Position numbers and translations under genes: made by a program
The notes under the pieces: generated by a model
The model's database searches: none
Told to the model about the DNA's origin: nothing
What the model saw: the letters and a program-made list of their open reading frames with translations, nothing else
Part shown: positions 1,976 through 44,974 of the stretch, piece after piece
How the letters are laid out: the number at the start of each line of letters is the position of its first letter
Numbering within the stretch: the stretch's first letter is position 1
IMG/VR virus record: IMGVR_UViG_3300044644_001125
Span: 1-64,000 of that record
Direction: 5' to 3' (one strand)
DNA length: 64,000 bases

Positions 1976-1999
1976 ATACACACAAGAGAGGAGAATCAC

Positions 2000-3088
2000 A
2001 TGCAGGATTTTGTAAAACAATTGTTTGAAAACAATGTGATTTCCGAGGATATGAAATCGGAAATTGAAAGCGCTTGGGAAAGTCGAATTCAAGAAAACCG
2101 TGATCAAGTCACTGCCACTCTACGTGAAGAATTTGCTCACAAATATGAGCACGATAAAGCCTCCTTACTCGAAGCTGTCGAAAACATGATTTCAGATAAA
2201 TTAGCTTCTGAACTTCAAGATTTCGCTGAAGACCGTCAAGGACTTATCGAAGCAAAAGCAAAATATGCTATGAAAATTGCTAAAGATACCAAAGCCATGG
2301 AATCTTTCGTTATGCAAAACCTTAGCAAAGAACTTGCCGAACTTAATGAAGACCGTAGAGCCGTTGCAGATAACATATCTAAATTGGAATCTTTTATCGT
2401 GGATGCACTAGCGAAAGAAATCGCAGATTTCCACACAGACAAAAAAGACTTAGCCGAAACTAAAGTTCGTTTAGTTAGAGAAAGTAAAGCTAAGTTCGAA
2501 GAAGTCAAAAAAGATTTCATTGCTCATTCAGCAGCTATCATCGAAAGCACCGTGACCAAAGGTCTTCGTGCAGAAATGACACAACTGAAAGAAGATATCG
2601 AATCAGCTCGCAGAAATGACTTCGGTCGCAGAATTTTTGAAAGTTTTGCCAGCGAATACGCAGCTAGTCACCTTAACGAGAAATCGGAAACTGTTAAATT
2701 GATGCAAGTCATTCAACAAAAAGAGATCGAGTTGGAAGAAGCAGCAAAAATCGTAGTACAAGCTAAACAACTCGCTGAAAGCAAAGAAGCTCAAGTACGA
2801 GTTCTTAAAGAATCAACTCAACGCAAAGACGTTCTTAACGAACTTCTCGGCCCATTAGTTGGCGATAAAAGAATCGTTATGAGTGAACTGCTCGAATCGG
2901 TACAAACAGATAAACTGTACGCAGCTTACGACAAATACCTACCTGCCGTCTTAGACAGCGGTGCTAGAACTTCTCGTAAAACTCTTACAGAATCTACAGA
3001 GATTACAGGTAACAAACAGGTACCGTCTTTCAGTGAAAAGACTGCCGAACTCACAGACATCCGCAGACTTGCGGGATTATCAGCTTAA
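2000..3088 (+). CDS. gp22: Prohead core scaffold protein (T4 gp22-like)
   Basis: Long coiled-coil, E/K/A-rich protein between protease and major capsid genes; GAGGAG RBS; CTAAATA at 1972-1978. Confidence 0.85.
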   Translation: MQDFVKQLFENNVISEDMKSEIESAWESRIQENRDQVTATLREEFAHKYEHDKASLLEAVENMISDKLASELQDFAEDRQGLIEAKAKYAMKIAKDTKAMESFVMQNLSKELAELNEDRRAVADNISKLESFIVDALAKEIADFHTDKKDLAETKVRLVRESKAKFEEVKKDFIAHSAAIIESTVTKGLRAEMTQLKEDIESARRNDFGRRIFESFASEYAASHLNEKSETVKLMQVIQQKEIELEEAAKIVVQAKQLAESKEAQVRVLKESTQRKDVLNELLGPLVGDKRIVMSELLESVQTDKLYAAYDKYLPAVLDSGARTSRKTLTESTEITGNKQVPSFSEKTAELTDIRRLAGLSA

Positions 3089-6536: not shown

Positions 6537-7379
6537 ATGAAACATCCGTATGAATATACCGTAATGGATAGCGATAGATTGGCTGCGTACATGAACCACG
6601 AAATACTTAGATATTGCAAATTACCGATTGATTCTGATAGAACTGATTCGTTACTTAATGCGTATCGAATGTCAGATGACAAAAAGTTAGCGAAAAGCAT
6701 AGATTTGTCTGGATGTAATGAATGTTTAGCAGCTATATATACCAACCCAATGAATCTTGAATTGGTCAAGTATCAAACAGAATTCCTATGTTTGGAAGCA
6801 GTAAAACTATATGGGTTTACATTAAGGTTTGTTAGAACGCAAACACCCGAAATATGCTTGGAAGCAGTGAAAAACTATCATTTGGCATTGCAGTGGGTTA
6901 AGAACCAAACACCCGAAATATGTTTGGCTGCTGTTGAGAAAAATGGATATGCGTTGCAGTACGTAAAAAACCAAACAGAAGAGATTTGTTTAGCTGCATT
7001 GCATTCCGAACCACGATCATTCTATATGATTAATGATCAAGAAGATTATATTGAATTAGCATTAAAGCTGGATTCATATAATATACGATTCGTTAAAAAT
7101 AGAACACCTGCAATGTGCATGGCATTAATTGACATGGATCCACTAGCGATATTTCACATAAACAGACCATCGCCTGAACTCTGTTTATATGCCATTCGAA
7201 AAGATTTACGTGCGATCGGATCGGTTCATTTTAGATGCATCCCAGAAGGTCCGATAAAAGTCGAATTGGCTAAGTGGTGTATGCAAGCTATCGTGAAATA
7301 TGGTGACAAGCTACGACATTATGAAGATTGCTGGTTTTTACCCAATCTCAAACACGAATTGGGTTATACCGTTAGATAA
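6537..7379 (+). CDS. DUF4116-like repeat protein
   Basis: Tandem QTPEICLEAVK.NG.AL.YVKN repeats. Confidence 0.75.
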   Translation: MKHPYEYTVMDSDRLAAYMNHEILRYCKLPIDSDRTDSLLNAYRMSDDKKLAKSIDLSGCNECLAAIYTNPMNLELVKYQTEFLCLEAVKLYGFTLRFVRTQTPEICLEAVKNYHLALQWVKNQTPEICLAAVEKNGYALQYVKNQTEEICLAALHSEPRSFYMINDQEDYIELALKLDSYNIRFVKNRTPAMCMALIDMDPLAIFHINRPSPELCLYAIRKDLRAIGSVHFRCIPEGPIKVELAKWCMQAIVKYGDKLRHYEDCWFLPNLKHELGYTVR

Positions 7380-7401
7380 CCAACCCAACACTTCATTCAA
7401 A

Positions 7402-7426
7402 AGAAAGCACCCGAAGGGTGCTTTCT
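7402..7426. terminator. GC-rich hairpin, probable terminator (U-tract better on the minus strand)
   Basis: Perfect 11-bp inverted repeat AGAAAGCACCC-GAA-GGGTGCTTTCT. Confidence 0.65.
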
Positions 7427-7521
7427 GCATTCTAGTCCCATGATAATCCCACGATAAATCCATAAACCCACAAATCCAACCATAATAAATACCAACAACA
7501 CTAAAACAGAGGGTATATATT

Positions 7522-8214
7522 ATGGATATTGAAGAGATCTTATATTATTATTTTGACGAGAATGAAGACGATGATTTGACAATTGACTTTCATGACTGGA
7601 GTGATCCAGAGTTTTGTTATTATGCGATGTTATGGAATGGGATGAATTTAAAGTATGCGAAGTATCAGGATGCAGGTATTAGGTATGCAGCGGTAGAGCA
7701 GAATGGAATGGCTATACAGTATGCGAAGAGAAAACCGCAGTATCTTTGTCATATGGCTGTGCAAGATGATGGTATGGCGTTGCAGTTTATCAAGAAGCAG
7801 GAAAGGTATATTTGTAAGTCTGCAATTCAGAATGATCCAAGAGCATTTAGATTCGTAATTAACCAAGATGAAGAGTTGTGTCAGATGGCTATTGATTTGG
7901 ATCCAAGAAATATTAGATTTGTCAAAGAAAAGACCCCTTTGTTATGTAAGTTAGCTATTGATACGAATCCATTTGCGATATTTGAAATTGAGATGCCTTC
8001 GGTTGAGTTGTGTGCGTATGCGGTGATGCAGGATTTGAGGACTATTGGTGCTGCAAATCATTATACGTTAGCGAGTCCATGGAAGGAGTTTTTCGAGCAT
8101 AATCGATTAATGGCTATGATGAAGTTTGGTGATAAGATGGTAAAGGATGGTAAGGATAGATGGAGTTACAATGGAATGATGTATGTACCTGGTCTTGGCA
8201 TCCCTGAATATTAA
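7522..8214 (+). CDS. DUF4116-like repeat protein (paralogue of 6537..7379)
   Basis: AVEQNGMAIQY, AIQNDPRAFRFVINQDEELC repeats; ATAAATA at 7485-7491. Confidence 0.72.
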   Translation: MDIEEILYYYFDENEDDDLTIDFHDWSDPEFCYYAMLWNGMNLKYAKYQDAGIRYAAVEQNGMAIQYAKRKPQYLCHMAVQDDGMALQFIKKQERYICKSAIQNDPRAFRFVINQDEELCQMAIDLDPRNIRFVKEKTPLLCKLAIDTNPFAIFEIEMPSVELCAYAVMQDLRTIGAANHYTLASPWKEFFEHNRLMAMMKFGDKMVKDGKDRWSYNGMMYVPGLGIPEY

Positions 8215-8290
8215 AGCTAAATACATCATCTAAGTAATTATGCAGAATCCCTCTGCGTAGACCTAGAACGTCAACTATAAGGAGAAACAA

Positions 8291-8674
8291 ATGGGACGTC
8301 CGTTAAAAAGAGATGTGAATGGTGTGGAAGTATTTGGTACATACGTAGGTGATGCTGGTATTCGTTGTGAAGCGTATATTGGTGGAAGTAATCAAAGTGA
8401 TGTATACATTGCACGTCAACGCGGTTCAAAAACATATCTAGTACATGATGTAAGTGCAAGCACTGAAGTGAAAGCAAGATTGGTAGCAGGTACACCTGCG
8501 GCTGTTGGTGAGATGCGTATTACTGGATATATTGATGGAGCAGATACACCGATTTACTTGAGAAAGTTAACTAAAAAGTCGGCAATTGATTTCAATGACA
8601 ACAAATATCATTGGGTATTGACCAACTATCAAGATTCTACAGCTGATCAGATCAAATTGACTCCATTCGTTTAA
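8291..8674 (+). CDS. Putative virion structural protein
   Basis: First gene after late-type promoter CTAAATA (8217-8223); AAGGAG RBS; heads the fibre block. Confidence 0.5.
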   Translation: MGRPLKRDVNGVEVFGTYVGDAGIRCEAYIGGSNQSDVYIARQRGSKTYLVHDVSASTEVKARLVAGTPAAVGEMRITGYIDGADTPIYLRKLTKKSAIDFNDNKYHWVLTNYQDSTADQIKLTPFV

Positions 8675-8684
8675 GGAGTAGCCC

Positions 8685-9866
8685 ATGGGACAAGTAATAC
8701 AAGTCAATGGTGACTATAATATAAAGACCAAGCCGACTGGCACAATCACGTTAGATACTGGTGATCGAAGTGGTAAAGTGGTTGTTACTGGTAATCTTGA
8801 GGTCAAGGGACATGTATTATCGGTCGCATCGGACGATTTAACAATCAAAGATAACATTGTTGTTTTGAACAATGGTGAGACTGGTGCTGGGGTTACTTTA
8901 GTAGATTCTGGATTATTGATTGATAGAGGAACCTTAGTACCTGCTGGTATATTGTACCACGAGCCAACTGATTCGTGGAATTTCGTACATGGATATGACG
9001 ATAGTACACATTTGTACTCATTCGCAAACAGTAATATTAAGGTAAAATCCATTCTCACTGATGTTTCAACTGACAATGGTGATTTGACGTTGATAGCTAC
9101 TGGTACTGGTGTAATTAAGGTTACAGGTACAACAGATTACGAAGACCGAATTCTCAATTATGACAATTTAGACGTTTTAGCAATTGATACGATTGCAAGA
9201 ACTGGATATGTAGCTACTATAACAACTAAACTACCACATGGAATAATTGCTGGTGATTTGGTTGATGTGTACTGCGCAACTGCATCTACCTTTAATGGTT
9301 CTAGTATACCGGTTATTTCGGTAACCGATTTAACTCTCACGTATGAGAGTGTGCATCCAGTGGTATTGGTTATGACGGTACTTGGGTATGTTAGAAAGAA
9401 TCCAGTAAAATCGGATGATTACATACCAAACATGCGAGCAGTTACCGATTATACTAGAAGTATTGTCAATACGTCAATTGATTACTTGAATGTAGCATTC
9501 AATTCTATCAGTGATTATAACACAGCCGTTACCGTAAACGATTCTTCCTCGGGTGGTGTTAGTCATATTTTATTTGAAGTTGATGGTGTTACTAGAGCAG
9601 TCATTAACAATTCAGGTTTATCAGTAGACAACATCAATATCTTTGGTAACACGATTTCCAGTAGTACGCATGCCATTAAATTGGACAGTGTATTAACTAT
9701 AAAAAATGTAGCATCCGATCCTGCGGTTGAAAGTGGACATTTGAGTTTGTATGCAAAGAGCGCGAGTGGACAGGGTGGGACTGGGTTATATTTCGTAAAT
9801 ACCGCTGGAACAACAGACGAATTAGTAAGTAGATCAAAAGCATTTCTATATTCGTTAATATTTTAA
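8685..9866 (+). CDS. Putative tail fibre/baseplate-associated structural protein
   Basis: Beta-rich G/T/V/D protein with GNLEVKG...DNIVVLN..ETGAGV motif typical of phage fibre shafts. Confidence 0.55.
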   Translation: MGQVIQVNGDYNIKTKPTGTITLDTGDRSGKVVVTGNLEVKGHVLSVASDDLTIKDNIVVLNNGETGAGVTLVDSGLLIDRGTLVPAGILYHEPTDSWNFVHGYDDSTHLYSFANSNIKVKSILTDVSTDNGDLTLIATGTGVIKVTGTTDYEDRILNYDNLDVLAIDTIARTGYVATITTKLPHGIIAGDLVDVYCATASTFNGSSIPVISVTDLTLTYESVHPVVLVMTVLGYVRKNPVKSDDYIPNMRAVTDYTRSIVNTSIDYLNVAFNSISDYNTAVTVNDSSSGGVSHILFEVDGVTRAVINNSGLSVDNINIFGNTISSSTHAIKLDSVLTIKNVASDPAVESGHLSLYAKSASGQGGTGLYFVNTAGTTDELVSRSKAFLYSLIF

Positions 9867-30554: not shown

Positions 30555-31021
30555 TGACTAAAAAACTTGAAACTCTGCTTAATATCGAAGAAAAAGCACC
30601 ACTTAAAATCAAGTCAAATGAAGAAACACAAGCTGAAGTTGCTAGTATTCAACAAAGCTATAATGAAATCACCGAGATGGCTAAGGGATTACCTAGAATC
30701 CGTGAGTTAGAAAACTTAGGTGAAAGAGAACTTGAAAAACTTGCAAAGAAAGCAGAAGCTGCATACGATGACCTTATGGACTTGGGTATGAATGTAGAAG
30801 TCCGGTATGCAAGCAGAATCTTTGAAGTAGCAAGTAGTATGTTAGGGCACTCAATCTCAGCTAACACAGCTAAGATTGATAAGAAATTAAAAGCAGTTGA
30901 TATGCAACTCAAGAAACTTAAGATGGAAAACAGAGCACCAGAAGATGATATGATCGATGGTACTGCTTATGTTACCTTAGATAGAAACGAGTTGATGTCC
31001 AAACTTTCTGGTAAAGGCTAA
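30554..31021 (+). CDS. Putative terminase small subunit (gp16-like)
   Basis: Helical 155 aa protein with DLGMNVE.RYA.RIFEVA and a C-terminal RNEL; located near the large subunit. Confidence 0.5.
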   Translation: MTKKLETLLNIEEKAPLKIKSNEETQAEVASIQQSYNEITEMAKGLPRIRELENLGERELEKLAKKAEAAYDDLMDLGMNVEVRYASRIFEVASSMLGHSISANTAKIDKKLKAVDMQLKKLKMENRAPEDDMIDGTAYVTLDRNELMSKLSGKG

Positions 31022-31029
31022 ATATAATC

Positions 31030-31596
31030 ATGAAAACACTACATCAATATCTCGCAGAATCGAAAAAAGACTACAACTTTGTTGTTAAGATTGCTGGTCC
31101 GCTACCTGATGAATTTGAAGGTACCTTGAAATCTAAACTAGAACAATTCAAAGTGTTACATTTCGATAAAACAACGACAACACCAATTCAAAAGCAACCT
31201 ATTGACTTCCCAAATAAAGCAAATTGCGAAGTTCATGTGTTTGCTATTACTTGTGATTACCCAGTGATTCCACCTGAAATCGCACAACGTATCAAAGCAA
31301 CCGGTGTTGATGAATCGTCTATTCGAGTTCATAACGCAGAAGACCCTTCACTTGATTACATCCCAGTTGGTGAACAAGTTCCTTCTGGTCATGCGTTATT
31401 ATCAGACCCACATCACAAAGAAGCCCCTGCTATTAATCAAAAAGACCACTACGGTCCAGAATATAACAAAGGTTTCTTAAAAGGTTTGGCTGCTCAAGCC
31501 AAAGACCGTAAGAAAGAATTGGGTCAAAACGTCGAATACAAGATCGCAAAACAGAAAATAGATAAGACTGGCCTTAACAGCGCCATAGGGAGTTAA
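31030..31596 (+). CDS. Putative head/internal virion protein
   Basis: MKTLHQYLAES N-terminus ending in L-x-E; CTAAATA at 31018-31024. Confidence 0.55.
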   Translation: MKTLHQYLAESKKDYNFVVKIAGPLPDEFEGTLKSKLEQFKVLHFDKTTTTPIQKQPIDFPNKANCEVHVFAITCDYPVIPPEIAQRIKATGVDESSIRVHNAEDPSLDYIPVGEQVPSGHALLSDPHHKEAPAINQKDHYGPEYNKGFLKGLAAQAKDRKKELGQNVEYKIAKQKIDKTGLNSAIGS

Positions 31597-31598
31597 AC

Positions 31599-32306
31599 AT
31601 GGATTTTCACAGCCTAGTGGCAAAAATGGGTGAGTTAAGCAAACCCTTAACAGAAAGCGAAGTTAAAATTGGTGAATGCGGAATGGATGCAACTACTCCA
31701 CACAACCCACCTACAATGACAGTTAGCTTGAATGCAAATGGCTTAGATGATATCTCTAGCCTAATGCGATTACTGGTTAAAGTTAACCCAGATATGATGC
31801 CTAAAGATGACAAAGGTCCTACTTTATCAGCAGATCCAAATATCTTAACCATTTCTAACAATCACCCAGAACCTCTTAAAATGCTGCCTGAACCAGCAGA
31901 TTTAGATGGTGATGAAGACGGTGATTTAGATAATGACGAAGATGAAGGAATGGCTGGTTCTATCGCAGGCGGTATTGCCGGTGGAATGGCTACTAAATCT
32001 CTAACAGGTGCTTCTACTGGTGCTAAAATCGGATCAGAAATTCAGGATAAATTCTTTGGTGATGAAGAAGAAACCGAAGAAGATTTAGATGGTGGCTTCC
32101 AATCAGCCAATACTTCAAACAAAGATACCAAAACCTTTGATACTGACAAACTAGTTGGTAAAAGTAATGGCATCGATAAAGAAAAAGATATGGTGAAACA
32201 TAGTTACAAGCAAGGTGATAACCCAATGGCTATGAAAGATCGTGACTTTAAAGAATCAATCAAACTTGATTTACAACAACGTTTGGCTGAAATCAAAGCA
32301 CGTTAA
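31599..32306 (+). CDS. Putative acidic head/internal virion protein
   Basis: PLTES processing-type motif and D/E-rich tracts; in the late operon. Confidence 0.5.
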   Translation: MDFHSLVAKMGELSKPLTESEVKIGECGMDATTPHNPPTMTVSLNANGLDDISSLMRLLVKVNPDMMPKDDKGPTLSADPNILTISNNHPEPLKMLPEPADLDGDEDGDLDNDEDEGMAGSIAGGIAGGMATKSLTGASTGAKIGSEIQDKFFGDEEETEEDLDGGFQSANTSNKDTKTFDTDKLVGKSNGIDKEKDMVKHSYKQGDNPMAMKDRDFKESIKLDLQQRLAEIKAR

Positions 32307-32326
32307 TCTAAAGATTAATCCAAAAG

Positions 32327-32349
32327 AAAGGCACCTACTCGGTGCCTTT
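32327..32349. terminator. Bidirectional terminator between convergent genes
   Basis: AAAGGCACC-TACTC-GGTGCCTTT. Confidence 0.8.
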
Positions 32350-32499
32350 TCTGTTTAATATGTTATAGATTTCCAACTGGCGGTTCAAGTTTTCCAATAC
32401 TTTCTTAGTATAGTAGCATTCACCTAGTTCACTTAGAAGTTTTTCATACCCAATCTTGAATTGATTATAAACTGTCAATTGTTGTTCTGCTTGTGTCAT
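32335..32499 (-). CDS. Small hypothetical protein (54 aa, MTQAEQQLTVYNQF...), not in ORF track
   Basis: ATG at 32499 with AGGAG RBS upstream; open to TAG at 32335. Confidence 0.65.
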   Translation of the reverse strand: MTQAEQQLTVYNQFKIGYEKLLSELGECYYTKKVLENLNRQLEIYNILNRKGTE

Positions 32500-32646
32500 A
32501 GCTTTCTCCTTTCTTGTATTTACATTGGCTCGCTCCTAGCGGAGCTCGCAGCATCTATTATAGGTTTTTAGCACATAATCAACAATAAGTCAATTATCTT
32601 TTAGGGTAAATACAACTAATTAAACCACATAAGGAAATAACCAAAG

Positions 32647-34266
32647 ATGGCAAACAGAAACCTAGATGGCGTTCAAATCTTAAGAGCACATCAAAAACAA
32701 CAATACACACTTGAACAAGTACAACACTTAGAGAAATGTATGGATCCAGTTACTGGACCTCTTTACTTCTGCAAAAACTTCTTGAAAATCCAGCATCCAA
32801 CTAGAGGTGCAATCCCATTTGAACCATACGAATATCAAGAAAGATTGATTCAAGCATATAACGATAATACTTATACAATCGCTATGCTACCACGTCAGAT
32901 GGGTAAAGCACTTTGCAACGAAACTCCTGTATTAACACCAAATGGATTCAAACGAATGGGTGATATCCAAGTCGGTGATACTATCTATACACCTAAAGGT
33001 ACACCAACTGAAGTAACTTTCATTACTGAAACGATGACAAATCGTACTTGTTACAATGTTGAATTCTCACACGGTGAAAGTATTATCGCAGATGCACACC
33101 ACCTTTGGACTTGGTTTGACCCAGGCTACAATGACTTGATTACTGAAAATACCGAATACCTGATTAAACGTGTTAATAAGTTTAAAACGTCAAACATTAG
33201 ACTCAGTATGGATTATACAAAACTCATTGAATTCGACAAGAAACCAATGAAACTAGATCCATATCTAATCGGTATTTGGATGGGTAATGACCCAGAAGTA
33301 AATCAAATGAGATGCTATACTCACGAATATACCAGATATAACGAGATGTTTAAATCCCATGGTCTTACTATGTCTGAATTAACACTAAGAAGACACAGTA
33401 AACGATTGGGTATGTACTCAGTTAATAACCTAGAGTTCATGGTAAAACCGGTTCTTAATAAGGATAATACCTTACCAGAAGAGCTCATGCTCAATGATTC
33501 TGAAACTCGTTTACAAATCATTAGAGGTATTATGGATGTATGCGGTAGTGTATCAGATACTGGGTACTGTACTTTTAAACATACCAATGAGAAAATCATG
33601 GAACAAACACGTTTCATGTTGGCTACTCTAGGTGTTAAAACCCATTTGAAAGTCGAAGTCTGTAAGTTTAAAACCAATTACTATCTTAATTTTTCAACTA
33701 AAGACTTAAGACTATTCAATCTGTCTGAGAAAGTTGATAAAGCTGCATTGAGTAATCACTTCCCAAATAATGAAAGAGTTTATATCAAAAGCATTACCAA
33801 AGCAAAATCAGTACCAGTTAGATGTTTACAAGTGGCAGATAGAAAACATCTATTCCTAGTGGGTAAAACTCTAGTACCAACACATAACACTACTTGTGCA
33901 TGTGGATTCTTGCTCTGGTATACCATGTTTGTTCCCGAAGCCCAAGTACTGATTGCTGCTCACAAATACGCCGGTGCACAAGATATTATGAACCGATATC
34001 GATATGGCTACGAGAACTTACCAGACTTTATCCGTGCCGGTGTTTATTCATATAACAGGAATACAATCGAATTTGATAATGGTGCTCGTATCCAAGCAAC
34101 TACCACTACTGAAAATACAGGTCGAGGTAAGTCGCTCTCTTTGATTTATTGCTTAGATGGAGATACTACTGTTCGTATCAGACACAAGGAAACCCTTGTA
34201 GAAGAAGAGATATCACTCGCTGCGTTATATCAACGACTTGACCCAGCGGTACAGGTTATTGCTTAA
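32647..34266 (+). CDS. terL: Terminase large subunit, fragment 1 (N-extein, cis intein, extein, split-intein N-part)
   Basis: gp17-like IQHP.RG.IPF.PYEYQ; Walker A PRQMGK|TT interrupted by an intein; GRGKSLSLIY followed by CLDGDT intein start and a stop codon. Confidence 0.93.
   Translation: MANRNLDGVQILRAHQKQQYTLEQVQHLEKCMDPVTGPLYFCKNFLKIQHPTRGAIPFEPYEYQERLIQAYNDNTYTIAMLPRQMGKALCNETPVLTPNGFKRMGDIQVGDTIYTPKGTPTEVTFITETMTNRTCYNVEFSHGESIIADAHHLWTWFDPGYNDLITENTEYLIKRVNKFKTSNIRLSMDYTKLIEFDKKPMKLDPYLIGIWMGNDPEVNQMRCYTHEYTRYNEMFKSHGLTMSELTLRRHSKRLGMYSVNNLEFMVKPVLNKDNTLPEELMLNDSETRLQIIRGIMDVCGSVSDTGYCTFKHTNEKIMEQTRFMLATLGVKTHLKVEVCKFKTNYYLNFSTKDLRLFNLSEKVDKAALSNHFPNNERVYIKSITKAKSVPVRCLQVADRKHLFLVGKTLVPTHNTTCACGFLLWYTMFVPEAQVLIAAHKYAGAQDIMNRYRYGYENLPDFIRAGVYSYNRNTIEFDNGARIQATTTTENTGRGKSLSLIYCLDGDTTVRIRHKETLVEEEISLAALYQRLDPAVQVIA
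32908..33888 (+). mobile_element. Class-3-type cis intein (327 aa) with degenerate LAGLIDADG domain, in the terminase Walker A
   Basis: Starts with Ala (ALCNETPV), block B HHLW, block F VRCLQV, ends PTHN followed by Thr; LDPYLIGIWMGND and RGIMDVCG endonuclease-like blocks. Confidence 0.85.
34150..34266 (+). mobile_element. Split intein 1, N-fragment (38 aa)
   Basis: CLDGDTTVRIR...EEISLAALY then stop, just before the Walker B acidic residues. Confidence 0.88.
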
Positions 34267-34330
34267 TGGCTCGCTGACGCTCGCACATATAATATGAAAC
34301 TAAAAGACGTAACTATCCATTAATAGAATA

Positions 34331-34683
34331 CTAAAAGATGATTGTCTTATTAGGTATATTATCTTTTAGTTATGATGTTCTTATAGATGATGTTTATATT
34401 TGATCTATTATCTTTTAGTTATGATGTTCTTATAGATGTTTGTATTAATGGTCTTATTGATGTGAGTTATTAGATAATTATCTTTTAGTTCAAAATGTAT
34501 GGGTTCGTATGGAGTTTATAACGTATGTGTGCATCTGGTAAAAAGCTATAATGTATGGGTTCGAATAGATCTAAAATGTATGTGCGCGAATGGAAACAGC
34601 TATAAGGGAATTATCTTTTAGAGTCAAAATGCGTGTGCGCGTGGCTTAAGCAGGTAGGAAGTAATGGATTCATTATCTTTTAG
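34331..34683. repeat. AT-rich repeat array containing ATTATCTTTTAG x5 and longer direct repeats
   Basis: Copies at 34358, 34407, 34477, 34610, 34672; 33-bp direct repeat 34357-34389 and 34406-34438; 14-bp AATGTATGGGTTCG at 34494 and 34550. Confidence 0.85.
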
Positions 34684-34749
34684 AATTATCTTATACGCTC
34701 CTACTATAATAGATTTAAGATAGAATCATTAATAGCTTTAATAATAGAG

Positions 34750-35230
34750 GCTTTTAATACTGCGGTATGTGGAGCGGAACATCTTAACCCGAAAAACTCG
34801 GGTTAATTCAAAGCATTCTCAATTGGGTTTTAAGTAATTGAAAAGTTCTGCGTACAAGTATCGCATCACAGCAGCAGTAGAGCGTTACAGAGGCGGTCAG
34901 CCGGTACCTCGAGCTCAGTCTTATTAATCTGACGGTGGCCACATGAACAACTGCTACCTCATTCATGCGACGTGGACTTTTTAGTCCATCTTTAGCCTTT
35001 GTAAATCTTTTCGCTATAACACAAATGGGTTGTATGAAGGCATATCCCATAACTCATCTGGTGGGGTAGTGTGTTATATCTCCGTTGCTAACTTCGGAAC
35101 TTCCATCCCTTGTGATCAAGTAGTCCAAGGTTTAAGGGCATCATATCAGTCGCCGATGCAGGCTTTCTTAGCAATTCTCTCGTCTTTCTATGTTCTATCT
35201 AGTAATTCGACGAGCAAGGTTTGGCTGGTG
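34750..35230 (-). ncRNA. Candidate large structured non-coding RNA (family unidentified, ends approximate)
   Basis: No credible ORF; more GC-rich than flanks; stems at 34784-34806, 34890-34910, 34973-34988, 35015-35078, 35108-35130, 35179-35214; strong promoters upstream on the minus strand. Confidence 0.55.
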
Positions 35231-35240
35231 CCTAAAAGAT

Positions 35241-35339
35241 AATAGACTTGGTGTCGGTATTGTATATAGTTCAAATAGACTTTGTGTCGGTAGGATTTGG
35301 TCTCTAAAAGATAATTGAGTAATAGACTTGGTGTCGGTA
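35241..35339. repeat. Three copies of a 19-bp repeat AATAGACTT(G/T)GTGTCGGTA
   Basis: Copies at 35241, 35274 and 35321, interleaved with CTAAAAGATAAT at 35232 and 35304. Confidence 0.85.
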
Positions 35340-35386
35340 TGGATTTGAGATGGTCTCGGTAAACTGCTTTTGTGTAAGTATGATTA

Positions 35387-35415
35387 ATTATAACTTAGAT
35401 TATGGGGACTGTCAA
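35387..35415 (-). promoter_or_regulatory. Consensus sigma70 promoter facing the non-coding region
   Basis: Minus strand TTGACA (35415-35410), 17 bp, TATAAT (35392-35387). Confidence 0.9.
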
Positions 35416-35457
35416 CCTATTTTTCAAGGTATCTCGGGTAATTCTTTAGTATAGTTA

Positions 35458-35486
35458 ATTGTAATCTATTTTGATTGGGTTGTCAA
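35458..35486 (-). promoter_or_regulatory. Second tandem sigma70 promoter
   Basis: Minus strand TTGACA (35486-35481), 17 bp, TACAAT (35463-35458). Confidence 0.85.
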
Positions 35487-35489
35487 CTG

Positions 35490-36203
35490 TTATTTTGGAA
35501 GATTATCGAAAAACTCTGTGTATGGGTCGTTTTTGATATTACTGTACTCAACTCGCAATCCTTTTAATTTTTCTTCCTGACCAGCAATTAGATCATCAAA
35601 ATTGCCATTTTGATTATGTTTATGTAATGCTTCTATTGCTGCTTTTATTTGTTCAGCTTGGTTTTTGATGCCTTCTAATTGAGTATTAACTAGTTTATTA
35701 TGATATTCAATTGCTTTGGCTTTGGTCGCTTCCCAGTCATATTCCACTCCATTGGAATTAAGAAACTTTTCTACTTTAGCCTTGCGACCGTATTCGTTCG
35801 CAACTCTCTGCAAATTACCCATTTCATCCCTAGCCAACATCTCATCAATGTTAGCCTGTAGGTCATCAACAAAACGAATCTTAGATTTTATTTTCTCACT
35901 TTGTTGTTTCGGTGCACCTTCAGCCGAACGCTCCCATTGAATAACGGTACCACCTTTATTTGTTGTTTTTTCAACTCTGGTAATACCAATATCGTCTAAG
36001 TAGAAATCAATACGAAATTGATTCTTATACATAGAACCTTGGGTAGAAAAGAACTTTTCACCGTCTAAGTCGTGTGCGTTTGATAGGATGAATTTAGCTT
36101 GTTTCTCTGATTTAAACTTACCATCATTGTAATCTTTTAAACCATATAATGTTTTTGCAATATCACCCTCTGTGGCTTCTGCTAATATGTCTTTTACTTG
36201 CAT
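35490..36203 (-). CDS. Putative internal head protein, coiled-coil C-terminus
   Basis: MQVKDILAEA N-terminus; GAGGA RBS; late-type ATAAATA on the minus strand at 36236-36230. Confidence 0.6.
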   Translation of the reverse strand: MQVKDILAEATEGDIAKTLYGLKDYNDGKFKSEKQAKFILSNAHDLDGEKFFSTQGSMYKNQFRIDFYLDDIGITRVEKTTNKGGTVIQWERSAEGAPKQQSEKIKSKIRFVDDLQANIDEMLARDEMGNLQRVANEYGRKAKVEKFLNSNGVEYDWEATKAKAIEYHNKLVNTQLEGIKNQAEQIKAAIEALHKHNQNGNFDDLIAGQEEKLKGLRVEYSNIKNDPYTEFFDNLPK

Positions 36204-36253
36204 TGAATTTCCTCATTTAACTGATCTTGTATTTATGATGCATCAATTATCTT

Positions 36254-36532
36254 TTAGACATCACGAACAGCAAGCACACTCCATTTACAACTTTTCAAAT
36301 CAGTGCCACGTTCAACAAGATCTGGAAATGGATATAAACTTTTAGCATGTCGATCACCATGCTCTTCACTCGACCAATACCAGTGAATTCCTGTAAATGC
36401 TCTAAACTCCCTAAACTCTGCTTCAGTTGGCAATCTCCAACCAATTCTACCATCTACATTTAATGCAAAACAGTAAAATTTGGCAGTATCCCAGTCCATG
36501 CTTAATTTGGTTTCGTAGAATTCTAGGGTCAT
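36254..36532 (-). CDS. DUF1566/Lcl C-terminal (C-type-lectin-like) domain protein
   Basis: WDTAKFYC..L...GWRLPTEAE, YWSS, VLAVR; start at 36532 by TAATG coupling. Confidence 0.75.
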   Translation of the reverse strand: MTLEFYETKLSMDWDTAKFYCFALNVDGRIGWRLPTEAEFREFRAFTGIHWYWSSEEHGDRHAKSLYPFPDLVERGTDLKSCKWSVLAVRDV

Positions 36533-37131
36533 TAGAGATCTCTTACCGGGTGAATTAAACACGTTTCATCCGGATCATTGCCAATATCATCGGAATGCCA
36601 AAAATAAGCATGCATAAGGTTAAAGTAATAACATTCTTCCGGTGTGGGAAACCGCCAGCCAACCTTACCATCGATATTAAGTGAAAAACAATACATCTGC
36701 GCTTCTTCTAATGATGTAGCTTTGATATACGACTGTGGTGCTAACTCAACTGGTATGTTATAAAATGGTTCTATTGTTCTAACAGCTCTAACATGCAATT
36801 CATAATCATCAAACCCCTCATCGTCTGAATCAGTTAGGAAGTCGTAGGTTTGTATAACAGTAAGCGGTTCTTCTTCTGATTCAACTATTCTATAACTACT
36901 AGACCAATATTCTGGAGTCTCAACCGATCCATCAACATACGCATCGCATAACTTAGTATCTAATCTAACTTCTTGTATGTATTGTTCCCGTATTATGTAC
37001 ATTTCGATGATGGTAGGTAACCTCCAACCTTCTTTATCATCTGCTACAAGATTGTCACAGTATTCAAGGGCATCTTCCCAAGTCGATACAACCTCTGTGC
37101 TTTTTGGTGCTAATTCTAAGTTAAAGTTCAT
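36532..37131 (-). CDS. Tandem DUF1566/Lcl domain protein
   Basis: WEDALEYC...GWRLPT..E...YWSSS...VRAVR followed by a second EEAQMYC...GWRFPT..E domain; ATG at 37131. Confidence 0.75.
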   Translation of the reverse strand: MNFNLELAPKSTEVVSTWEDALEYCDNLVADDKEGWRLPTIIEMYIIREQYIQEVRLDTKLCDAYVDGSVETPEYWSSSYRIVESEEEPLTVIQTYDFLTDSDDEGFDDYELHVRAVRTIEPFYNIPVELAPQSYIKATSLEEAQMYCFSLNIDGKVGWRFPTPEECYYFNLMHAYFWHSDDIGNDPDETCLIHPVRDL

Positions 37132-37164
37132 ATAGATATCAAAATGTAAGTTATTGGTATGGTA

Positions 37165-37193
37165 ACTATACCATATAAGTAGACGTGACGCAA
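37165..37193 (-). promoter_or_regulatory. Sigma70-type promoter for the DUF1566 pair
   Basis: Minus strand TTGCGT (37193-37188), 17 bp, TATAGT (37170-37165). Confidence 0.6.
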
Positions 37194-37264
37194 ACATTAT
37201 CTTTTAGAAATGTTAAATAGAGGTAATAAACTAATTACTTATTAATTTCAAACGGTGAACTATC

Positions 37265-38894
<1,630 letters not shown>

Positions 38895-38936
38895 ATACAC
38901 GAAACCATTACTTAAATTTTCATCAGGGATTATCAC

Positions 38937-39965
38937 ATGAGCAAGGCAACCTATTTATTATCTCCAATTGACGGAAACACCTACTGCAAAACCAATGGTA
39001 AGTTCACTATACATCTTAGGGAATATGGACTTACCTATCAAGATTATTATGAAACTTATATACTTGGGTATTGTCCAATATGTGCATGCGGGTCTAAAGT
39101 TACGATGAATGTATCGACCCATTTACATCCACGCAGTTGTGGAAAGCCTGTGTGTGTTGGTAAAATCACCAGCGATGTTAAACAGAATTGGACTCCGGAA
39201 CAGAGAGAGCAGGATTCAGCCAATAAGAAAGCCGCAAGTGCTGCAGAGACACCGGAGAAAAAACAACAGCGAAACGATAAACGTAAAGCAACTAACTTAA
39301 AAAATCACGGCGTTGAGTGGTCTACCCAGTCGGAAACAATGAAATCTAAGTCAAAACAGACTAAACTTGTACGACACGGTGATGAAAACTACAATAACAG
39401 CAAGATGATCAGTGCAACCAATCTAGCAAAACCTAGAGAGGAAAAAGACGAGATCAATGAAAAACGACGTCTAACTAATTTAGATATGCATGGTGTCGAA
39501 AACTGCTGTTTGATTCCGGGAAATTCGAGTAAATCGAATAAAGGAAACGCGAAGATTAAAGATTACACATTGCCATCTGGTAAGGTTATTGGAGTTCGTG
39601 GTTACGAACCAAATGCAATGGATACCTTATTAGAATCGTATCAAGAATCTGATATATTGATGCACGATGATTACTCAGAATATCAAATCCAAGTTTTCAG
39701 CTATACCTCGGACAAAGGTAGAATCGCGAAATACTACCCAGACATTTATATCCCTTCGGAAAACCGAATTATTGAGATCAAAAGTCAATGGTGGTGGGAT
39801 GGTAATGGTAAGACTGACGAAAAATATACAACCCGACTTGCGAATAATCTTAGAAAAAGGCAAGCCGTGATTGATGCTGGATATAATTACGAAGTGTGGT
39901 TATTTACTAGCAAGACAAACTATAGAGTACTAAAAGATGATGCAGACTTTCAAACCAAACACTAA
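38937..39965 (+). CDS. Free-standing PD-(D/E)XK-type endonuclease
   Basis: VRGYEP, YYPDIYIPSENRIIEIKS motif; N-terminal Cys motif and K..TNL..HGVE repeats; TTAAATA at 38891-38897. Confidence 0.72.
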   Translation: MSKATYLLSPIDGNTYCKTNGKFTIHLREYGLTYQDYYETYILGYCPICACGSKVTMNVSTHLHPRSCGKPVCVGKITSDVKQNWTPEQREQDSANKKAASAAETPEKKQQRNDKRKATNLKNHGVEWSTQSETMKSKSKQTKLVRHGDENYNNSKMISATNLAKPREEKDEINEKRRLTNLDMHGVENCCLIPGNSSKSNKGNAKIKDYTLPSGKVIGVRGYEPNAMDTLLESYQESDILMHDDYSEYQIQVFSYTSDKGRIAKYYPDIYIPSENRIIEIKSQWWWDGNGKTDEKYTTRLANNLRKRQAVIDAGYNYEVWLFTSKTNYRVLKDDADFQTKH

Positions 39966-40278
39966 GAACTTAAAGGTACTAACACCAGATGGATTCCAAC
40001 CCTTCTCTGGTGTTAGTATGCGTGGAGTTAAACCAATTATTCGATTAACATTCGAAAAAGACGTATGGATAGAATGCACACCTGAGCATAAATTCTACAT
40101 CTCTGAAACTGAACAAAAGTTAGCAAGTGATTTTAGGATTGGTGATACCATATTAAGTTCGGATGGTGATTTGAAGTTAATCACTTCTGAAGATTTGGGT
40201 AGAACTGAACCAGTATACGATTTAATTGAAGTTGCTAACGGTCATCGGTTCTATGCGAATTCACTATTAAGTTCGAAT
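39937..40278 (+). mobile_element. Split intein 2, C-fragment (114 aa)
   Basis: VLTPDGF, block B CTPEHKF, FRIGD, block F VYDLIEV, HRFYANSLLSSN|C. Confidence 0.88.
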
Positions 40279-41040
40279 TGCGAATTCTTAATTGATGATG
40301 AAACGTTAATTAATTCGGTTAAATTGGCAGAACTAAAGGGTGTAGATCCGCTATTGACGATGGGGCAAATGCGTTGGTATAAAGAAATCAATCCATTGTC
40401 AACCTATCTAGTATCACTAGACCCAAGTTTGGGAACAGGCGGTGACTTTGCTGCTATGCAAGTATTTGAAATGCCTAGTATGGAACAAGTGGGTGAATGG
40501 CGACACAATACCACACCTGTTCAAACGCAGATAAGGCATTTGAGGGATATCTTAAAACACATCCATGATAGTGGTATTGAAAAATCTGGGTTTGCTCCAA
40601 CTACATATTACAGTATGGAGAATAATACACTAGGTGAAGCAGCCCTAATCGTTATTGAGAGTATTGGTGAGGAGAACTTTCATGGGTTATTCCTGTCAGA
40701 ACCGATTAAGAAAGGGCATATCAGGAAGTTCCGTAAAGGGTTTAATACCACACATAGAACAAAAGTTACTGCATGTAGTCAGTTTAAAAACTTATTAGAA
40801 ACTGGTAAGATGAAGATTAACTCTAAAGTTCTAGTATCTGAGTTGAAAACTTATATCTCAAGGGGTGTTGGGTTTGGTGCTAAATCAGGTGAGAATGACG
40901 ATTTGATTTCTGCAGTTCTTCTTATTATAAGAATGGCAACTGTATTATCTGATTGGGATCCATCGATATATGATAAGATGTCTGAGAAACTGACTGAAGA
41001 TCAGATGCCATTGCCTATCTTTATTAGTAGTGGATTCTAA
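39937..41040 (+). CDS. terL: Terminase large subunit, fragment 3 (IntC2 plus C-terminal nuclease domain)
   Basis: 114 aa intein C-part ending SSN, then CEFL, LDPSLGTGGDFAA, ENNTLG, GENDDL RNase H-like nuclease motifs. Confidence 0.93.
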   Translation: MMQTFKPNTKNLKVLTPDGFQPFSGVSMRGVKPIIRLTFEKDVWIECTPEHKFYISETEQKLASDFRIGDTILSSDGDLKLITSEDLGRTEPVYDLIEVANGHRFYANSLLSSNCEFLIDDETLINSVKLAELKGVDPLLTMGQMRWYKEINPLSTYLVSLDPSLGTGGDFAAMQVFEMPSMEQVGEWRHNTTPVQTQIRHLRDILKHIHDSGIEKSGFAPTTYYSMENNTLGEAALIVIESIGEENFHGLFLSEPIKKGHIRKFRKGFNTTHRTKVTACSQFKNLLETGKMKINSKVLVSELKTYISRGVGFGAKSGENDDLISAVLLIIRMATVLSDWDPSIYDKMSEKLTEDQMPLPIFISSGF

Positions 41041-41140
41041 AAGATAATCGAACCCAATAAACCCAAGGCTAAAAGATAATTGAAACCCACGTACCATAAG
41101 CTAAAAGATAATTGACCTACCATAAACTATTATCTTTTAG
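41037..41140. repeat. Array of the 12-bp motif: three copies at 32-bp period plus one inverted copy
   Basis: CTAAAAGATAAT at 41037, 41069, 41101; ATTATCTTTTAG at 41129. Confidence 0.9.
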
Positions 41141-41161
41141 CTATAACCAAAAGGACAACTA

Positions 41162-41569
41162 ATGAGAGAAACAATAGACGAAATACACAACTTGAAATAC
41201 GAAGAACACGACAAGTTGAATGAAAATTCCATAGACGATGCAATCGTGTTCCTACAGCAATTGTTACCTGGTACTAAACAACCAACGGTAGAAGTTCAGT
41301 TTGATGGTGAGATTGAATTGTATTGGGCAAAAGATTACTTGGAATTACAGGTTGGGTTCTATGGAGATGGTACGTATTCGTTCTATGCGAAAAACAACAA
41401 ACTCGATGACACTATCTCAGGTGATAACATCCCAGTAAATATCATCAGTCAGCGAATCGTACCTTATATTAACCCAAGAAAGGTCTTTGGATTAGAGGGA
41501 TTAACTGACGAAGACATAAAACGACTAGAAGGCATCAGTCAACTGAATGACCAAAGTCCCACAGAATAG
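41162..41569 (+). CDS. Hypothetical protein
   Basis: 135 aa ORF with AAGGA RBS. Confidence 0.6.
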   Translation: MRETIDEIHNLKYEEHDKLNENSIDDAIVFLQQLLPGTKQPTVEVQFDGEIELYWAKDYLELQVGFYGDGTYSFYAKNNKLDDTISGDNIPVNIISQRIVPYINPRKVFGLEGLTDEDIKRLEGISQLNDQSPTE

Positions 41570-41583
41570 GCTAAATACCGATT

Positions 41584-43302
41584 ATGGATACACGAAATAA
41601 CATTGCAACAGATTTATTTTACAAAATACGAAGCAGATTCTCTGGTCTAAAATTAGGAACGGAATCTGGTGAGATAACTATTATCCCAGAGGATGCACGT
41701 TTCTTCGATTTTGATTATATGGAAGGTGAAACCGCTATTGGTCATGTGAGTATTAGTTTGGCTGAACAGAATTCCATGAAGGTATATTTCTCACATGGAA
41801 TTACCGAAACCATGGATACAAATCAAAAGAACAACTGGTATGGGTTTTTAAAGGAGTTAAGGATATTTGCAAAACGCAGGCTGTTAAACTTCGATCCTAG
41901 AGACATTGCCAAAGACAACCTAGATCAAAGAGACTATTCGTTCTTGAGCCAAAATGCAAAATCTGCAACACCAGCACCAATTGGAGAAAGTATAATGAGT
42001 GAAAGTAACCTTTATGGTACTAAAAACGTAAGCTATCAGAAGTTGATGGATACACGATTAATTATCAAGCACAGTAAAACCTTGAATGATGATATGGCAC
42101 CTGGGTCTCGTTCACGCAACATCTCAGCTTTATTCGTAGAGAATAGTGATGGTGAAAGATTCAAATACCCATTCAAACACTTGGCTGGTGCTAGAGCTAT
42201 GCAACGACATGTTGCTAATGGTGGTTTGCCTTATGATGAACTTGGTAAATCTATTACTGGTATGAGTGAAGAAATTGCACAGTTGAAAAGTTTTGGTAAC
42301 TATGTTGTTAGAAACGATTTGATGAATTCAGATACTAATAATATGGTTGAACGTAGTACTGCCCAATTGGACCATCTACGCGAAACTTTACACAAATTAG
42401 CAAAACAACACCACTACGAATCATACAAAGAAAACTTCAAAGCTGCCGCACCAATGGAAATGCCGCAATCTGTAGTTGAAGAATATAAAGATAAGTTCAC
42501 TGTACGTAACTTCAAAGAAGATATCGCATCTGTGTTTCCCGTTATCTATAGATTGATGCAAGAAAACGGCATCGAGTATTCTGATATTGTTAACATGACT
42601 TCTTCAGATGAACCCGTTTCTGAAGAAATCTCGGTTATTGACCCAATGACTAAATTTGAACAATGGGCTATGAACTTAGGTGAAGAAGATGCTATTGTTA
42701 GTTCAGACCCAGAAAATCAAAAGTCTGCTATTGCTGAACTACAAGACTTAGTTAAAGAACCTTTACCTGCTGGTGTCGATGGGTTGAATGCCATTGAAAG
42801 CCTAAAAGGTATTATCGATGAACCCGCTTTGAATAGAGCAATCGTTAAATCTGCTAACGAAGATCCTGAAAAATGCGTGATTCCTTTGATTCACTCTTTC
42901 TTGCAACAACGTGCACCTGAAGTAGTTGATCAAATCGATTGGGAACATGGTCATGAATCGGAACATTCTGATACTGGTGAAACTGAAGTTGAAAAACTTG
43001 AGAAAGAAGACGTAGCCTCTGAATGCGGTGATTCCGATGAAGAAGAACGTGGTCACGGTAACGTAGATATGAATGAACTATTCGAATACGTTAAATCTTT
43101 CTACGACCACATGGAAAACAAATTCCCATTAGGTCCAGAAAAAGTAACCATCATGGTTGGTAAGAAGTTCGGTGAATCAGCAGCCAATGCAGTTAAGAAA
43201 CTAATTGAACGTATGGCTCCTGAACAAGCTAGTGTTGGTATTCACGCTGCCCCTGAAGAATCTTCTGAAATCGCTCGCTTTAAACAGTTAGCTGGAATTT
43301 AA
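41584..43302 (+). CDS. Large putative head-associated virion protein
   Basis: CTAAATA at 41571-41577; acidic central/C-terminal region; ends RFKQLAGI like the scaffold (RRLAGLSA); no gp20 portal motifs seen. Confidence 0.55.
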   Translation: MDTRNNIATDLFYKIRSRFSGLKLGTESGEITIIPEDARFFDFDYMEGETAIGHVSISLAEQNSMKVYFSHGITETMDTNQKNNWYGFLKELRIFAKRRLLNFDPRDIAKDNLDQRDYSFLSQNAKSATPAPIGESIMSESNLYGTKNVSYQKLMDTRLIIKHSKTLNDDMAPGSRSRNISALFVENSDGERFKYPFKHLAGARAMQRHVANGGLPYDELGKSITGMSEEIAQLKSFGNYVVRNDLMNSDTNNMVERSTAQLDHLRETLHKLAKQHHYESYKENFKAAAPMEMPQSVVEEYKDKFTVRNFKEDIASVFPVIYRLMQENGIEYSDIVNMTSSDEPVSEEISVIDPMTKFEQWAMNLGEEDAIVSSDPENQKSAIAELQDLVKEPLPAGVDGLNAIESLKGIIDEPALNRAIVKSANEDPEKCVIPLIHSFLQQRAPEVVDQIDWEHGHESEHSDTGETEVEKLEKEDVASECGDSDEEERGHGNVDMNELFEYVKSFYDHMENKFPLGPEKVTIMVGKKFGESAANAVKKLIERMAPEQASVGIHAAPEESSEIARFKQLAGI

Positions 43303-44899: not shown

Positions 44900-44974
44900 G
44901 CCGGTGTAGCTCAGTAGTAGAGCAGCTGTCTAGTAAACAGCAGGTCATGTGTGCAATCCACATTACCGGCTCCA
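44900..44974 (+). tRNA. tRNA-Thr (anticodon AGT), CCA encoded
   Basis: Acceptor GCCGGTG/TACCGGC, D stem GCTC/GAGC, anticodon stem GCTGT/ACAGC with loop CT-AGT-AA, T stem ATGTG/CACAT, ends TCCA. Confidence 0.9.

Follow-up and report, generated by a model that had tools for sequence, protein, structure and literature searches.

The stretch analysed here, referred to as the window, comprises positions 1 to 64,000 of IMG/VR record IMGVR_UViG_3300044644_001125, and between 32647 and 41040 it encodes the large terminase subunit (TerL), the DNA-packaging motor of an uncultured giant phage, in three separate pieces. These are plus-strand open reading frames (ORFs) at 32647-34266 (ORF1, 539 amino acids (aa)), 38160-38894 (ORF2, 244 aa) and 39937-41040 (ORF3, 367 aa), with 3893 nucleotides (nt) between the first and second and 1042 nt between the second and third. 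Each ORF was searched separately by BLASTP, with no sequence joined across stops, using as references the intact TerL proteins of two phages, Phosso of Sinorhizobium (532 aa) and PA5oct of Pseudomonas (531 aa). The search gave four extein segments, which are 87, 87, 103 and 253 aa long, add up to 530 aa or ~60.4 kDa, and covered Phosso TerL from end to end without gap or overlap, at E values of 1e-19 to 5e-84. Such a tiling on an intact TerL is far beyond chance. The parts of the three ORFs, including the N-terminal (IntN) and C-terminal (IntC) fragments of two split inteins, are as follows.

32647-32907 (+): TerL extein 1, 87 aa (ORF1 residues 1-87, aligned to Phosso TerL 1-85); ends in PRQMGK, the first half of Walker A
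32908-33888 (+): cis intein, 327 aa; begins with Ala1, ends in THN, with Thr at +1 and a LAGLIDADG-type endonuclease insert
33889-34149 (+): TerL extein 2, 87 aa (ORF1 residues 415-501, Phosso TerL 86-173); the TT at its start completes Walker A, and it ends in SLIY, the Walker B strand
34150-34263, stop to 34266 (+): IntN1, 38 aa; Cys1 directly after SLIY
38160-38495 (+): IntC1, 112 aa; block B TxxH, ends in SHQ, +1 Cys
38496-38804 (+): TerL extein 3, 103 aa (ORF2 residues 113-215, Phosso TerL 174-277); starts with CDEF (the Walker B Asp-Glu), contains TSTPN (motif III), ends in REFN
38805-38891, stop to 38894 (+): IntN2, 29 aa; Cys1
39937-40278 (+): IntC2, 114 aa; TxxH, ends in SSN, +1 Cys
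40279-41040 including the stop, coding to 41037 (+): TerL extein 4, 253 aa (ORF3 residues 115-367, Phosso TerL 278-530); starts with CEFL

These parts come in the order of a gp17-type terminase, the ATPase motifs (Walker A, Walker B and motif III) first and the RNase H-like nuclease domain after them. Extein 3 is 54-59% identical to Phosso TerL, and extein 4, which holds the end of the ATPase domain and the RNase H-like nuclease domain (Pfam Terminase_6C), is 51% identical and gave the lowest of the BLASTP E values (5e-84). Matches to TerL were found in 1702-3009 phage records. Walker A is broken at GK/TT and Walker B at LIY/CDE, and both motifs would be whole only after splicing. An initial annotation, made from the sequence alone, had proposed a gp17-like terminase in pieces 3.9 kb and 1.0 kb apart, with Walker A and B restored only by splicing, one cis intein, two different split inteins at LIY/CDE and REFN/CEF, and a middle fragment that begins with an IntC and ends in the IntN of another intein. 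The measured spacing, the junctions and the tiling on intact Phosso and PA5oct TerL agree with that proposal, and its residue counts for the four exteins (87, 87, 103 and 253) are exact. It had also allowed for an intact terminase elsewhere; with Phosso TerL as the tblastn query, no second TerL was found in the 64-kb window, where only the four extein segments matched. The gene order around TerL is conserved across related loci (numbered here with the prefix L; L008 and L089 in this case) and resembles the tail-to-terminase block of PA5oct. The sole large-terminase gene observed in the window sits where related phages have TerL.

The interruption of the P-loop is contiguous. The cis intein of ORF1 matches PDB entries 6BS8 and 6OWN (E=2e-22, phmmer). 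Entry 6BS8 is the DnaB intein of Mycobacterium smegmatis, which belongs to class 3, and the two sequences align at the ALxxxTP start, at the Trp of block B (HHLW with QHQW), at block F (VPVRC in both) and at VPTH in both. Position 1 has no Cys, Ser or Thr nucleophile, being an Ala right after PRQMGK whose position is fixed by alignment to RQMGKTT of Phosso and to Ala1 of 6BS8. The block B Trp, the Cys at F:4 and the Thr at G:5 are all present, and the absence of an N-terminal nucleophile together with Cys at F:4 is the class 3 signature (PMC4031507). These motifs place the P-loop intein in class 3, as a homologue of the M. smegmatis DnaB intein. With M. smegmatis DnaB intein 1 (6BS8) and with phage helicase and terminase inteins it has in common Ala1, the block B Trp, Cys F:4, Thr G:5 and insertion in the P-loop; unlike M. 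smegmatis DnaB intein 1, it resides in TerL instead of DnaB, is followed by Thr at +1 and carries a ~220-aa LAGLIDADG-type insert. The LAGLIDADG-like motifs in these middle ~220 aa were read off the translation, and the match to the PI-PfuI endonuclease is weak. The intein also matches PHROG 36964, an intein-bearing TerL (E=3.6e-54). As RaK2-like and related jumbo phages align to ORF1 through the intein, this intein is common at the site.

The other two inteins are split, both between blocks A and B, with blocks B, F and G in the IntC parts. Intein motifs (Cys1, TxxH, terminal Asn or Gln, +1 Cys or Thr) stand exactly at the extein junctions, and a motif of the IntN1 type, C-L-D/G-G-x-T-T-V-K/R-I-R..L-Y, closes the N fragments in 11 related loci. 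IntC2 aligns with PDB 6DSL_B, entitled "Consensus engineered intein CatC", over its full length and through the +1 Cys and +2 Glu (E=3e-12), which places split intein 2 at the Cat-TerL site, where the ATPase domain ends; this assignment of the site rests on the CatC alignment together with a review in which Cat-TerL is described as the consensus of two inteins, GOS-TerL and AceL-TerL (PMC11766414). IntC1 matches CatC more weakly (E=3.6e-6) and is ~30% identical to IntC2 over its first 79 residues. An AlphaFold2 (AF2) model of ORF2 residues 1-112 had predicted local distance difference test (pLDDT) values of 82-97, its top Foldseek match was 6DSL (E=2.3e-6, template modelling score TMt 0.77), and the remaining strong matches were all inteins. 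A PDB search with IntN2 and its flank, a query too short for the purpose, gave no meaningful match. Split intein 1, by contrast, is inserted in Walker B, which makes it a paralogue and not an allele of the inteins at the Cat-TerL site, and on these alignments the two split inteins are paralogues within one atypically split family.

In host protein (TerL), Cys1 and +1 Cys, both split inteins resemble the AceL-TerL, GOS-TerL and Cat-TerL inteins (PDB 6DSL; PMC11766414), and their sizes are close to those of that family, with IntN fragments of 38 and 29 aa (25-37 aa in the family) and IntC fragments of 112 and 114 aa (104-115 aa). Split intein 1 differs from the family in its Walker B site and in its end, which is His-Gln or, in other alleles, Lys-Asn. 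Splicing is known for other inteins with a C-terminal Gln (PMC4031507).

The intein halves could instead act as mere dimerisation modules that hold the terminase pieces together with no peptide bond formed, as split-intein halves bind tightly and the C-terminal Gln of split intein 1 is non-canonical and slow in some inteins (PMC4031507). We regard such non-covalent assembly as very unlikely. The strict conservation of Cys1, of TxxH, of the +1 Cys and of the terminal Asn or Gln is explained only by selection on the chemistry, and a HINT domain of ~150 aa left in the Walker B strand, along with a 327-aa intein left in the P-loop, would be expected to abolish the ATPase.

Ratios of nonsynonymous to synonymous substitution rates (dN/dS) against close relatives, with L089 as the reference for IntN2 and the cis intein, approximate because dS is near saturation, were 0-0.06 for the exteins, 0.024-0.027 for IntC2, 0.018 for IntN2, 0.12 for the cis intein, 0.19 for IntN1 and 0.25 for IntC1, and extein 2 is 100% identical to that of L089 at a dS of 0.87. 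Every intein part is under purifying selection. These values bear directly on the proposal that the fractured terminase is a decaying pseudogene and that an intact terminase elsewhere packages the DNA. Such a proposal would fit a gene so heavily invaded, with its three inteins, its pair of endonuclease genes and its 3-kb cargo, and 64 of ~327 kb were inspected for a second terminase. It is nevertheless very unlikely, given dN/dS of 0-0.06 in the exteins and 0.02-0.25 in the inteins, catalytic residues that are invariant across 39 diverged homologues, the lack of a second TerL in the window, the conserved surrounding gene order and the persistence of the layout in many lineages.

The two gaps between the pieces of this split terminase contain the following features.

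37265-38188 (+): HE1, a free-standing HNH-like gene, 307 aa; overlaps the start of IntC1 by 29 nt
38937-39965 (+): HE2, a free-standing endonuclease-like gene (DUF7487), 342 aa; begins 42 nt after IntN2
35014-35164 (-): Polynucleobacter-1 RNA (RF01718); 75.9 bits against a gathering score of 37 (cmscan)
35490-37197 (-): three cargo genes, of 237 aa and, with an Lcl_C (DUF1566) domain, 102 aa and 221 aa

The second gap (38895-39936) is taken up by HE2, the 3' end of which overlaps the start of IntC2 by 29 nt. HE2 matches Pfam DUF7487 (2e-30) and PHROG 3339, "homing endonuclease" (5.9e-6). It is found at the same position in L006, L009, L052 and L089, is absent from L090, which has a 25-nt spacer, and in L017 persists only as a remnant. 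HE1 has homologues directly upstream of IntC1 in L004, L008-L011, L013, L090 and L091; it is missing in L089, and the endonuclease copy of L010 appears as two separate high-scoring segment pairs in tblastn, which may reflect a frameshift. An alignment of HE1 with seven homologues from the same position shows an invariant D-H..N..N, typical of HNH nucleases. HE1 matches PHROG 5104 and has no Pfam match, and PDB sequence searches with HE1 and HE2 gave no useful match. The AF2 model of HE1 (pLDDT 82) has Cas9 HNH domains as its best Foldseek matches, which are not significant (E 0.2-0.9). An HNH-like endonuclease is what the alignment suggests for HE1. Both HE1 and HE2 belong to the split-intein elements. 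A second DUF7487/HE2-like sequence lies at 5211-5558 (+), with 34% identity over 116 aa, and more free-standing endonuclease genes of the same family are probable in this phage.

In the first gap, 2998 nt separate IntN1 from HE1, and ~3 kb of this is not present in compact relatives. The candidate non-coding RNA that the initial annotation had placed here was identified by cmscan as a Polynucleobacter-1 RNA, and the same RNA lies at the same place in L089 (7798-7947, -) and L091 (250-399, -), scoring 72-77 bits across the three. About 230 nt including the region upstream of the RNA are near-identical in the window, L089 and L091, in which the adjoining coding DNA has dS>1. Minimum free energy folding was uninformative (z-score 0.41), and the call rests on the Rfam covariance score and on conservation across loci. 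Weinberg and colleagues reportedly listed the motif in 2010 for Burkholderiales and for fresh water and estuary. Its location in a phage may say something about its function; at this locus it is cargo of the first gap, outside the splicing system.

Of the minus-strand cargo proteins, that of 221 aa matches Lcl_C above the gathering threshold (4.8e-13) and that of 102 aa below it (2e-05), their two reading frames overlapping by 31 nt. Gene tables of L089 and L091 list minus-strand genes that match in size or domain at the cargo position, and tblastn with the cargo proteins gave no match in TerL loci other than these two. In L089, the 237-aa gene at the matching position has a Pfam Phage_T4_Y05D domain. 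Two matches to the sigma-70 consensus (TTGACA-17-TATAAT), one perfect and the other 11/12, stand on the minus strand at 35415-35387 and 35486-35458; the Polynucleobacter-1 RNA lies to one side of them and the 237-aa cargo gene to the other. The initial annotation had described the genes in the gap as unrelated, which holds for the RNA and the three minus-strand genes and fails for the gene just before each IntC, which is homing-endonuclease-like in both cases.

Endonuclease ORFs between gene pieces also accompany group I and group II introns, and terL genes split by group I introns are documented in other huge phages (PMC12880540), so that joining at the RNA level, or recoding, was considered. 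It is highly improbable here. A cmscan of 31000-43000 returned no group I or II intron at E<=1, giving only the Polynucleobacter-1 RNA; complete in-frame HINT motifs stand at every junction; the first gap contains opposite-strand genes; and in L014 and L016 the same site is taken up by a mini-intein that is contiguous and in frame. Joining of the pieces as proteins remains the reading that we pursue below.

A repeated 11-mer, TTATCTTTTAG, is a candidate signal for co-expression of the three ORFs. It has 25 exact copies in the window, where 0.06 are expected; nearly all are intergenic and upstream of genes, of a tRNA or of the Polynucleobacter-1 RNA, and TAAATA often comes after them. The copies include the following.

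32594-32604 (+): TTATCTTTTAG, 43 nt before the start codon of ORF1
34359-34683 (five copies, +), 35232 and 35304 (-), 37197 (before HE1), 41037-41140, 44814 and 44869: further copies of TTATCTTTTAG

In L089, which is without HE1, a copy stands 49 nt upstream of the middle fragment. From its positions, TTATCTTTTAG is probably a phage-specific promoter element. The five tandem-like copies cluster just after ORF1. A tRNA-Thr (anticodon AGT) at 44900-44974 (+) has a copy 21 nt upstream, and L089 and L090 carry two tRNAs there. At the level of translation, ORF2 and ORF3 have weak Shine-Dalgarno sequences and start inside the preceding endonuclease genes, an arrangement that suggests translational coupling to those genes and makes their expression level uncertain.

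The middle fragment, with its IntC-extein-IntN architecture, is the diagnostic piece of this arrangement. A search of 5.8 billion proteins returned it in at least 65 protein clusters, with 41-100% identity, at least 97% coverage and lengths of 242-285 aa. All 39 aligned members keep T49 and H52 (block B), C113 (+1), D114 and E115 (Walker B) and C216 (Cys1 of IntN2). To the initial annotation the double split had seemed a much less described arrangement; we found no description of it in the full-text literature searched, and its recurrence in at least 65 clusters makes it far commoner in metagenomes than that wording implied. Among genome contigs, the relatives appear only in aquatic metagenome-assembled genome bins of mixed taxa, which are uninformative about the host.

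Occupancy of the TerL insertion sites was surveyed in 80 IMG/VR loci and in eight contigs from protein look-ups. There are three such sites, in the P-loop (site a), in Walker B (site b) and at REFx/CEF (site c), and every occupancy state was found; the calls at site c (L008, L016, L052) and at site a (L014, L019) come from reading the ORFs.

Intein-free: most loci, Phosso and PA5oct
Site a split only: the cultured Agrobacterium phage Atu_ph07, as two adjacent coding sequences with Ser1 and +1 Thr
Site b split only: L011, L050 and L071
Site c split only: L052
Sites b and c split, three genes: the window, L089 and L006-L010
Sites a and b split: L013 and L018
Split at all three sites, four genes: L004 (endonuclease genes present) and L017 (compact, none)
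Contiguous mini-intein at site b: L014, L015 and L016
Class 3 intein at site a: the window, L089 and L019

Empty, contiguous and split states at the same sites are as expected, because mobile inteins in a functional gene should be polymorphic. Both gaps are compact in L006 and L008-L010. A multi-piece TerL is a conserved, polymorphic trait of an aquatic jumbo phage clade, some members of which have four pieces. The IntC1 allele is uncoupled from the phylogeny of its host gene, since the His-Gln end (25/39) and the mostly Lys-Asn end (14/39) change 11 times on the extein tree, at least eight of these changes being forced by well-supported branches, and random labels give 11.7.

Several of these loci show further detail. 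The four-gene TerL of L004 (2722-13422) includes a 5-kb gap, and that of L017 (2286-5668) has spacers of ~75-150 nt and the remnant of HE2. The mini-inteins at the Walker B site (L014 7220-9349; L016 1248-2840) are 149-151 aa long, end in SHQ or THN and consist of an IntN1-like part, a short linker and an IntC1-like part, being non-split relatives of split intein 1. In two loci with the Lys-Asn allele, L006 (~9060-9103) and L071 (~8730-8766), a relic of the downstream extein (..DEFAFV.. and ..DELA.., respectively) follows IntN1 before the stop; it may be a footprint of the origin of the split, for example by partial duplication or by internal deletion of a contiguous intein. In L013 the fragment made of the site a IntC and extein 2 is tandemly duplicated (7117-8019 and 8019-8774), the first copy diverging after ~170 residues. 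In Atu_ph07 (L003), the coding sequences at 7595-7966 and 7978-9786, annotated as "terminase large subunit", form an atypically split P-loop intein pair with an IntN of ~38 aa beginning with Ser1 and an IntC of ~148 aa ending in SHN before a +1 Thr; no mention of this split intein was found in the literature searched.

This distribution also disposes of the weakest alternative, that the stops and gaps are artefacts of assembly or chimerism: although the source is a metagenomic assembly, the same five-gene arrangement and gene order recur in independent assemblies (ENA, JGI, Logan and IMG/VR) from different samples, and the close relatives L089, L090 and L091 differ by many substitutions, so that the assembly errors considered in the initial annotation are ruled out and the probability of this alternative is negligible. 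Even taken together, the four alternatives retain only a small part of the overall probability.

We therefore consider it very likely that this terminase is made as three translation units, having been broken by selfish elements, and is rejoined at the protein level. The scheme that follows would connect the anatomy, homology, conservation and purifying selection observed at the locus by way of splicing chemistry, orthogonality and co-transcription, which we infer. Three precursors of 62, 28 and 41 kDa would be translated. The class 3 intein would leave ORF1 in cis, forming the Walker A loop at GK/TT; IntN1 and IntC1 would complete one HINT domain and ligate LIY/CDE, forming Walker B; and IntN2 and IntC2 would complete another and ligate REFN/CEF, joining the ATPase to the nuclease domain. 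The end product would be a gp17-type terminase of 530 aa and ~60 kDa. A cross-reaction between IntC1 and IntN2 would circularise or polymerise the middle extein, and one between IntN1 and IntC2 would skip extein 3; given these risks of cross-pairing, the paralogous split inteins must be orthogonal. Each split was probably created or kept by the free-standing homing-endonuclease gene between the intein halves, and the ~3 kb of cargo, with its structured RNA and three opposite-strand genes, would have joined the first gap later in this lineage. Copies of TTATCTTTTAG before ORF1 and before HE1 probably let ORF1 be expressed together with the block HE1-ORF2-HE2-ORF3, even though cargo on the other strand lies between them.

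Several points weigh against this reading. Pfam matches to Terminase_6N and 6C on the fragments are all below gathering thresholds, which is why the fragment assignments rest on the BLAST tiling and on PDB matches, and the search for a second terminase covered 64 kb of ~327 kb. Block G of split intein 1 is non-canonical, with His-Gln here and Lys-Asn in other alleles; IntC1 is less constrained than the exteins (dN/dS 0.25), within ratios that near-saturated dS leaves approximate; and ORF2 and ORF3 have the weak Shine-Dalgarno sequences and the embedded starts described above. That these inteins splice is a deduction, and the orthogonality of the two split inteins is a logical requirement of the scheme, not a result.

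A further step is possible and, in our view, doubtful. The paralogous split inteins at sites b and c, with the P-loop inteins of relatives, might form a natural, strictly orthogonal set, and multi-piece splicing together with a Cys-dependent class 3 intein might serve as a post-translational gate on the packaging ATPase and nuclease. If so, both activities would be held inactive until all pieces had been made under permissive conditions.

The arrangement extends the fractured genes described by Dassa et al. 2009 (PMC2677866), in which a split intein interrupts the gene of an enzyme, with an endonuclease gene between the halves. As in those genes, a free-standing endonuclease gene on the same strand lies between the IntN and IntC parts, here at both breaks, and the single GOS terminase locus of that study likewise has an unusual split point and a long C-part of 122 aa. 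The spacer after IntN was 27-51 nt there and is 42 nt in the second gap here, in contrast to 2998 nt in the first. Each gene in that study was fractured in two, whereas the present one is fractured twice and has a contiguous intein besides, and those of L004 and L017 are fractured three times. The endonucleases also differ, being GIY-YIG or Vsr-like there and HNH-like (HE1) and DUF7487 (HE2) here, and the layout of that study has no counterpart to the 3.9-kb first gap with its RNA gene and three opposite-strand genes. The AceL-TerL, GOS-TerL and Cat-TerL inteins are treated as isolated pairs in those parts of the published work that were available to us; here they belong to a set of two or three inteins.

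Engineered multi-fragment ligation and split-intein circular ligation of peptides and proteins (SICLOPPS) provide the closest match in design, using three polypeptides, two split inteins and an IntC-extein-IntN middle piece that cyclises when the pair is cognate. Unlike these, the present system is natural and evolved, in an essential phage enzyme. As its two split inteins are homologous, their specificity must have evolved between paralogues. In the Jug phages (PMC12880540), too, selfish elements carrying endonuclease genes break up a jumbo-phage terL at several points; those fragments are attributed to group I introns and repair at the RNA level, in contrast to the HINT domains and protein-level repair proposed here. 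The components are all known, namely fractured genes, the AceL/GOS/Cat-TerL inteins, class 3 P-loop inteins and Gln-ending inteins. The full-text literature searched, which included few subscription papers, yielded no terminase or other natural protein whose three or four separately encoded chains are joined through two or three split inteins that are paralogues, and it contained no description of a Walker B site family with a conserved non-canonical block G or of the occupancy spectrum at the three TerL sites.

For annotation, terminases recorded as "missing" or "partial" in jumbo-phage contigs can be multi-gene fractured TerLs. For protein engineering, the relatives supply ready families of short-IntN split inteins at three sites, among them a Walker B family with a conserved C-terminal Gln or Lys-Asn, and these families could partner orthogonally with the AceL-TerL and Cat-TerL inteins already in use; the cultured phage Atu_ph07 is a tractable experimental system. 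For intein biology, if splicing occurs as proposed, this is a natural essential enzyme that needs two independent trans-splicing reactions, and three in some relatives, and its homologous inteins must have evolved mutual orthogonality, given a middle piece of the IntC-extein-IntN form that chemists use for cyclisation. Across these phages, one gene gives a well-sampled view of the life cycle of inteins and homing endonucleases, from the empty site and the contiguous mini-intein to the split intein accompanied by an endonuclease gene and the split intein with a decayed one.

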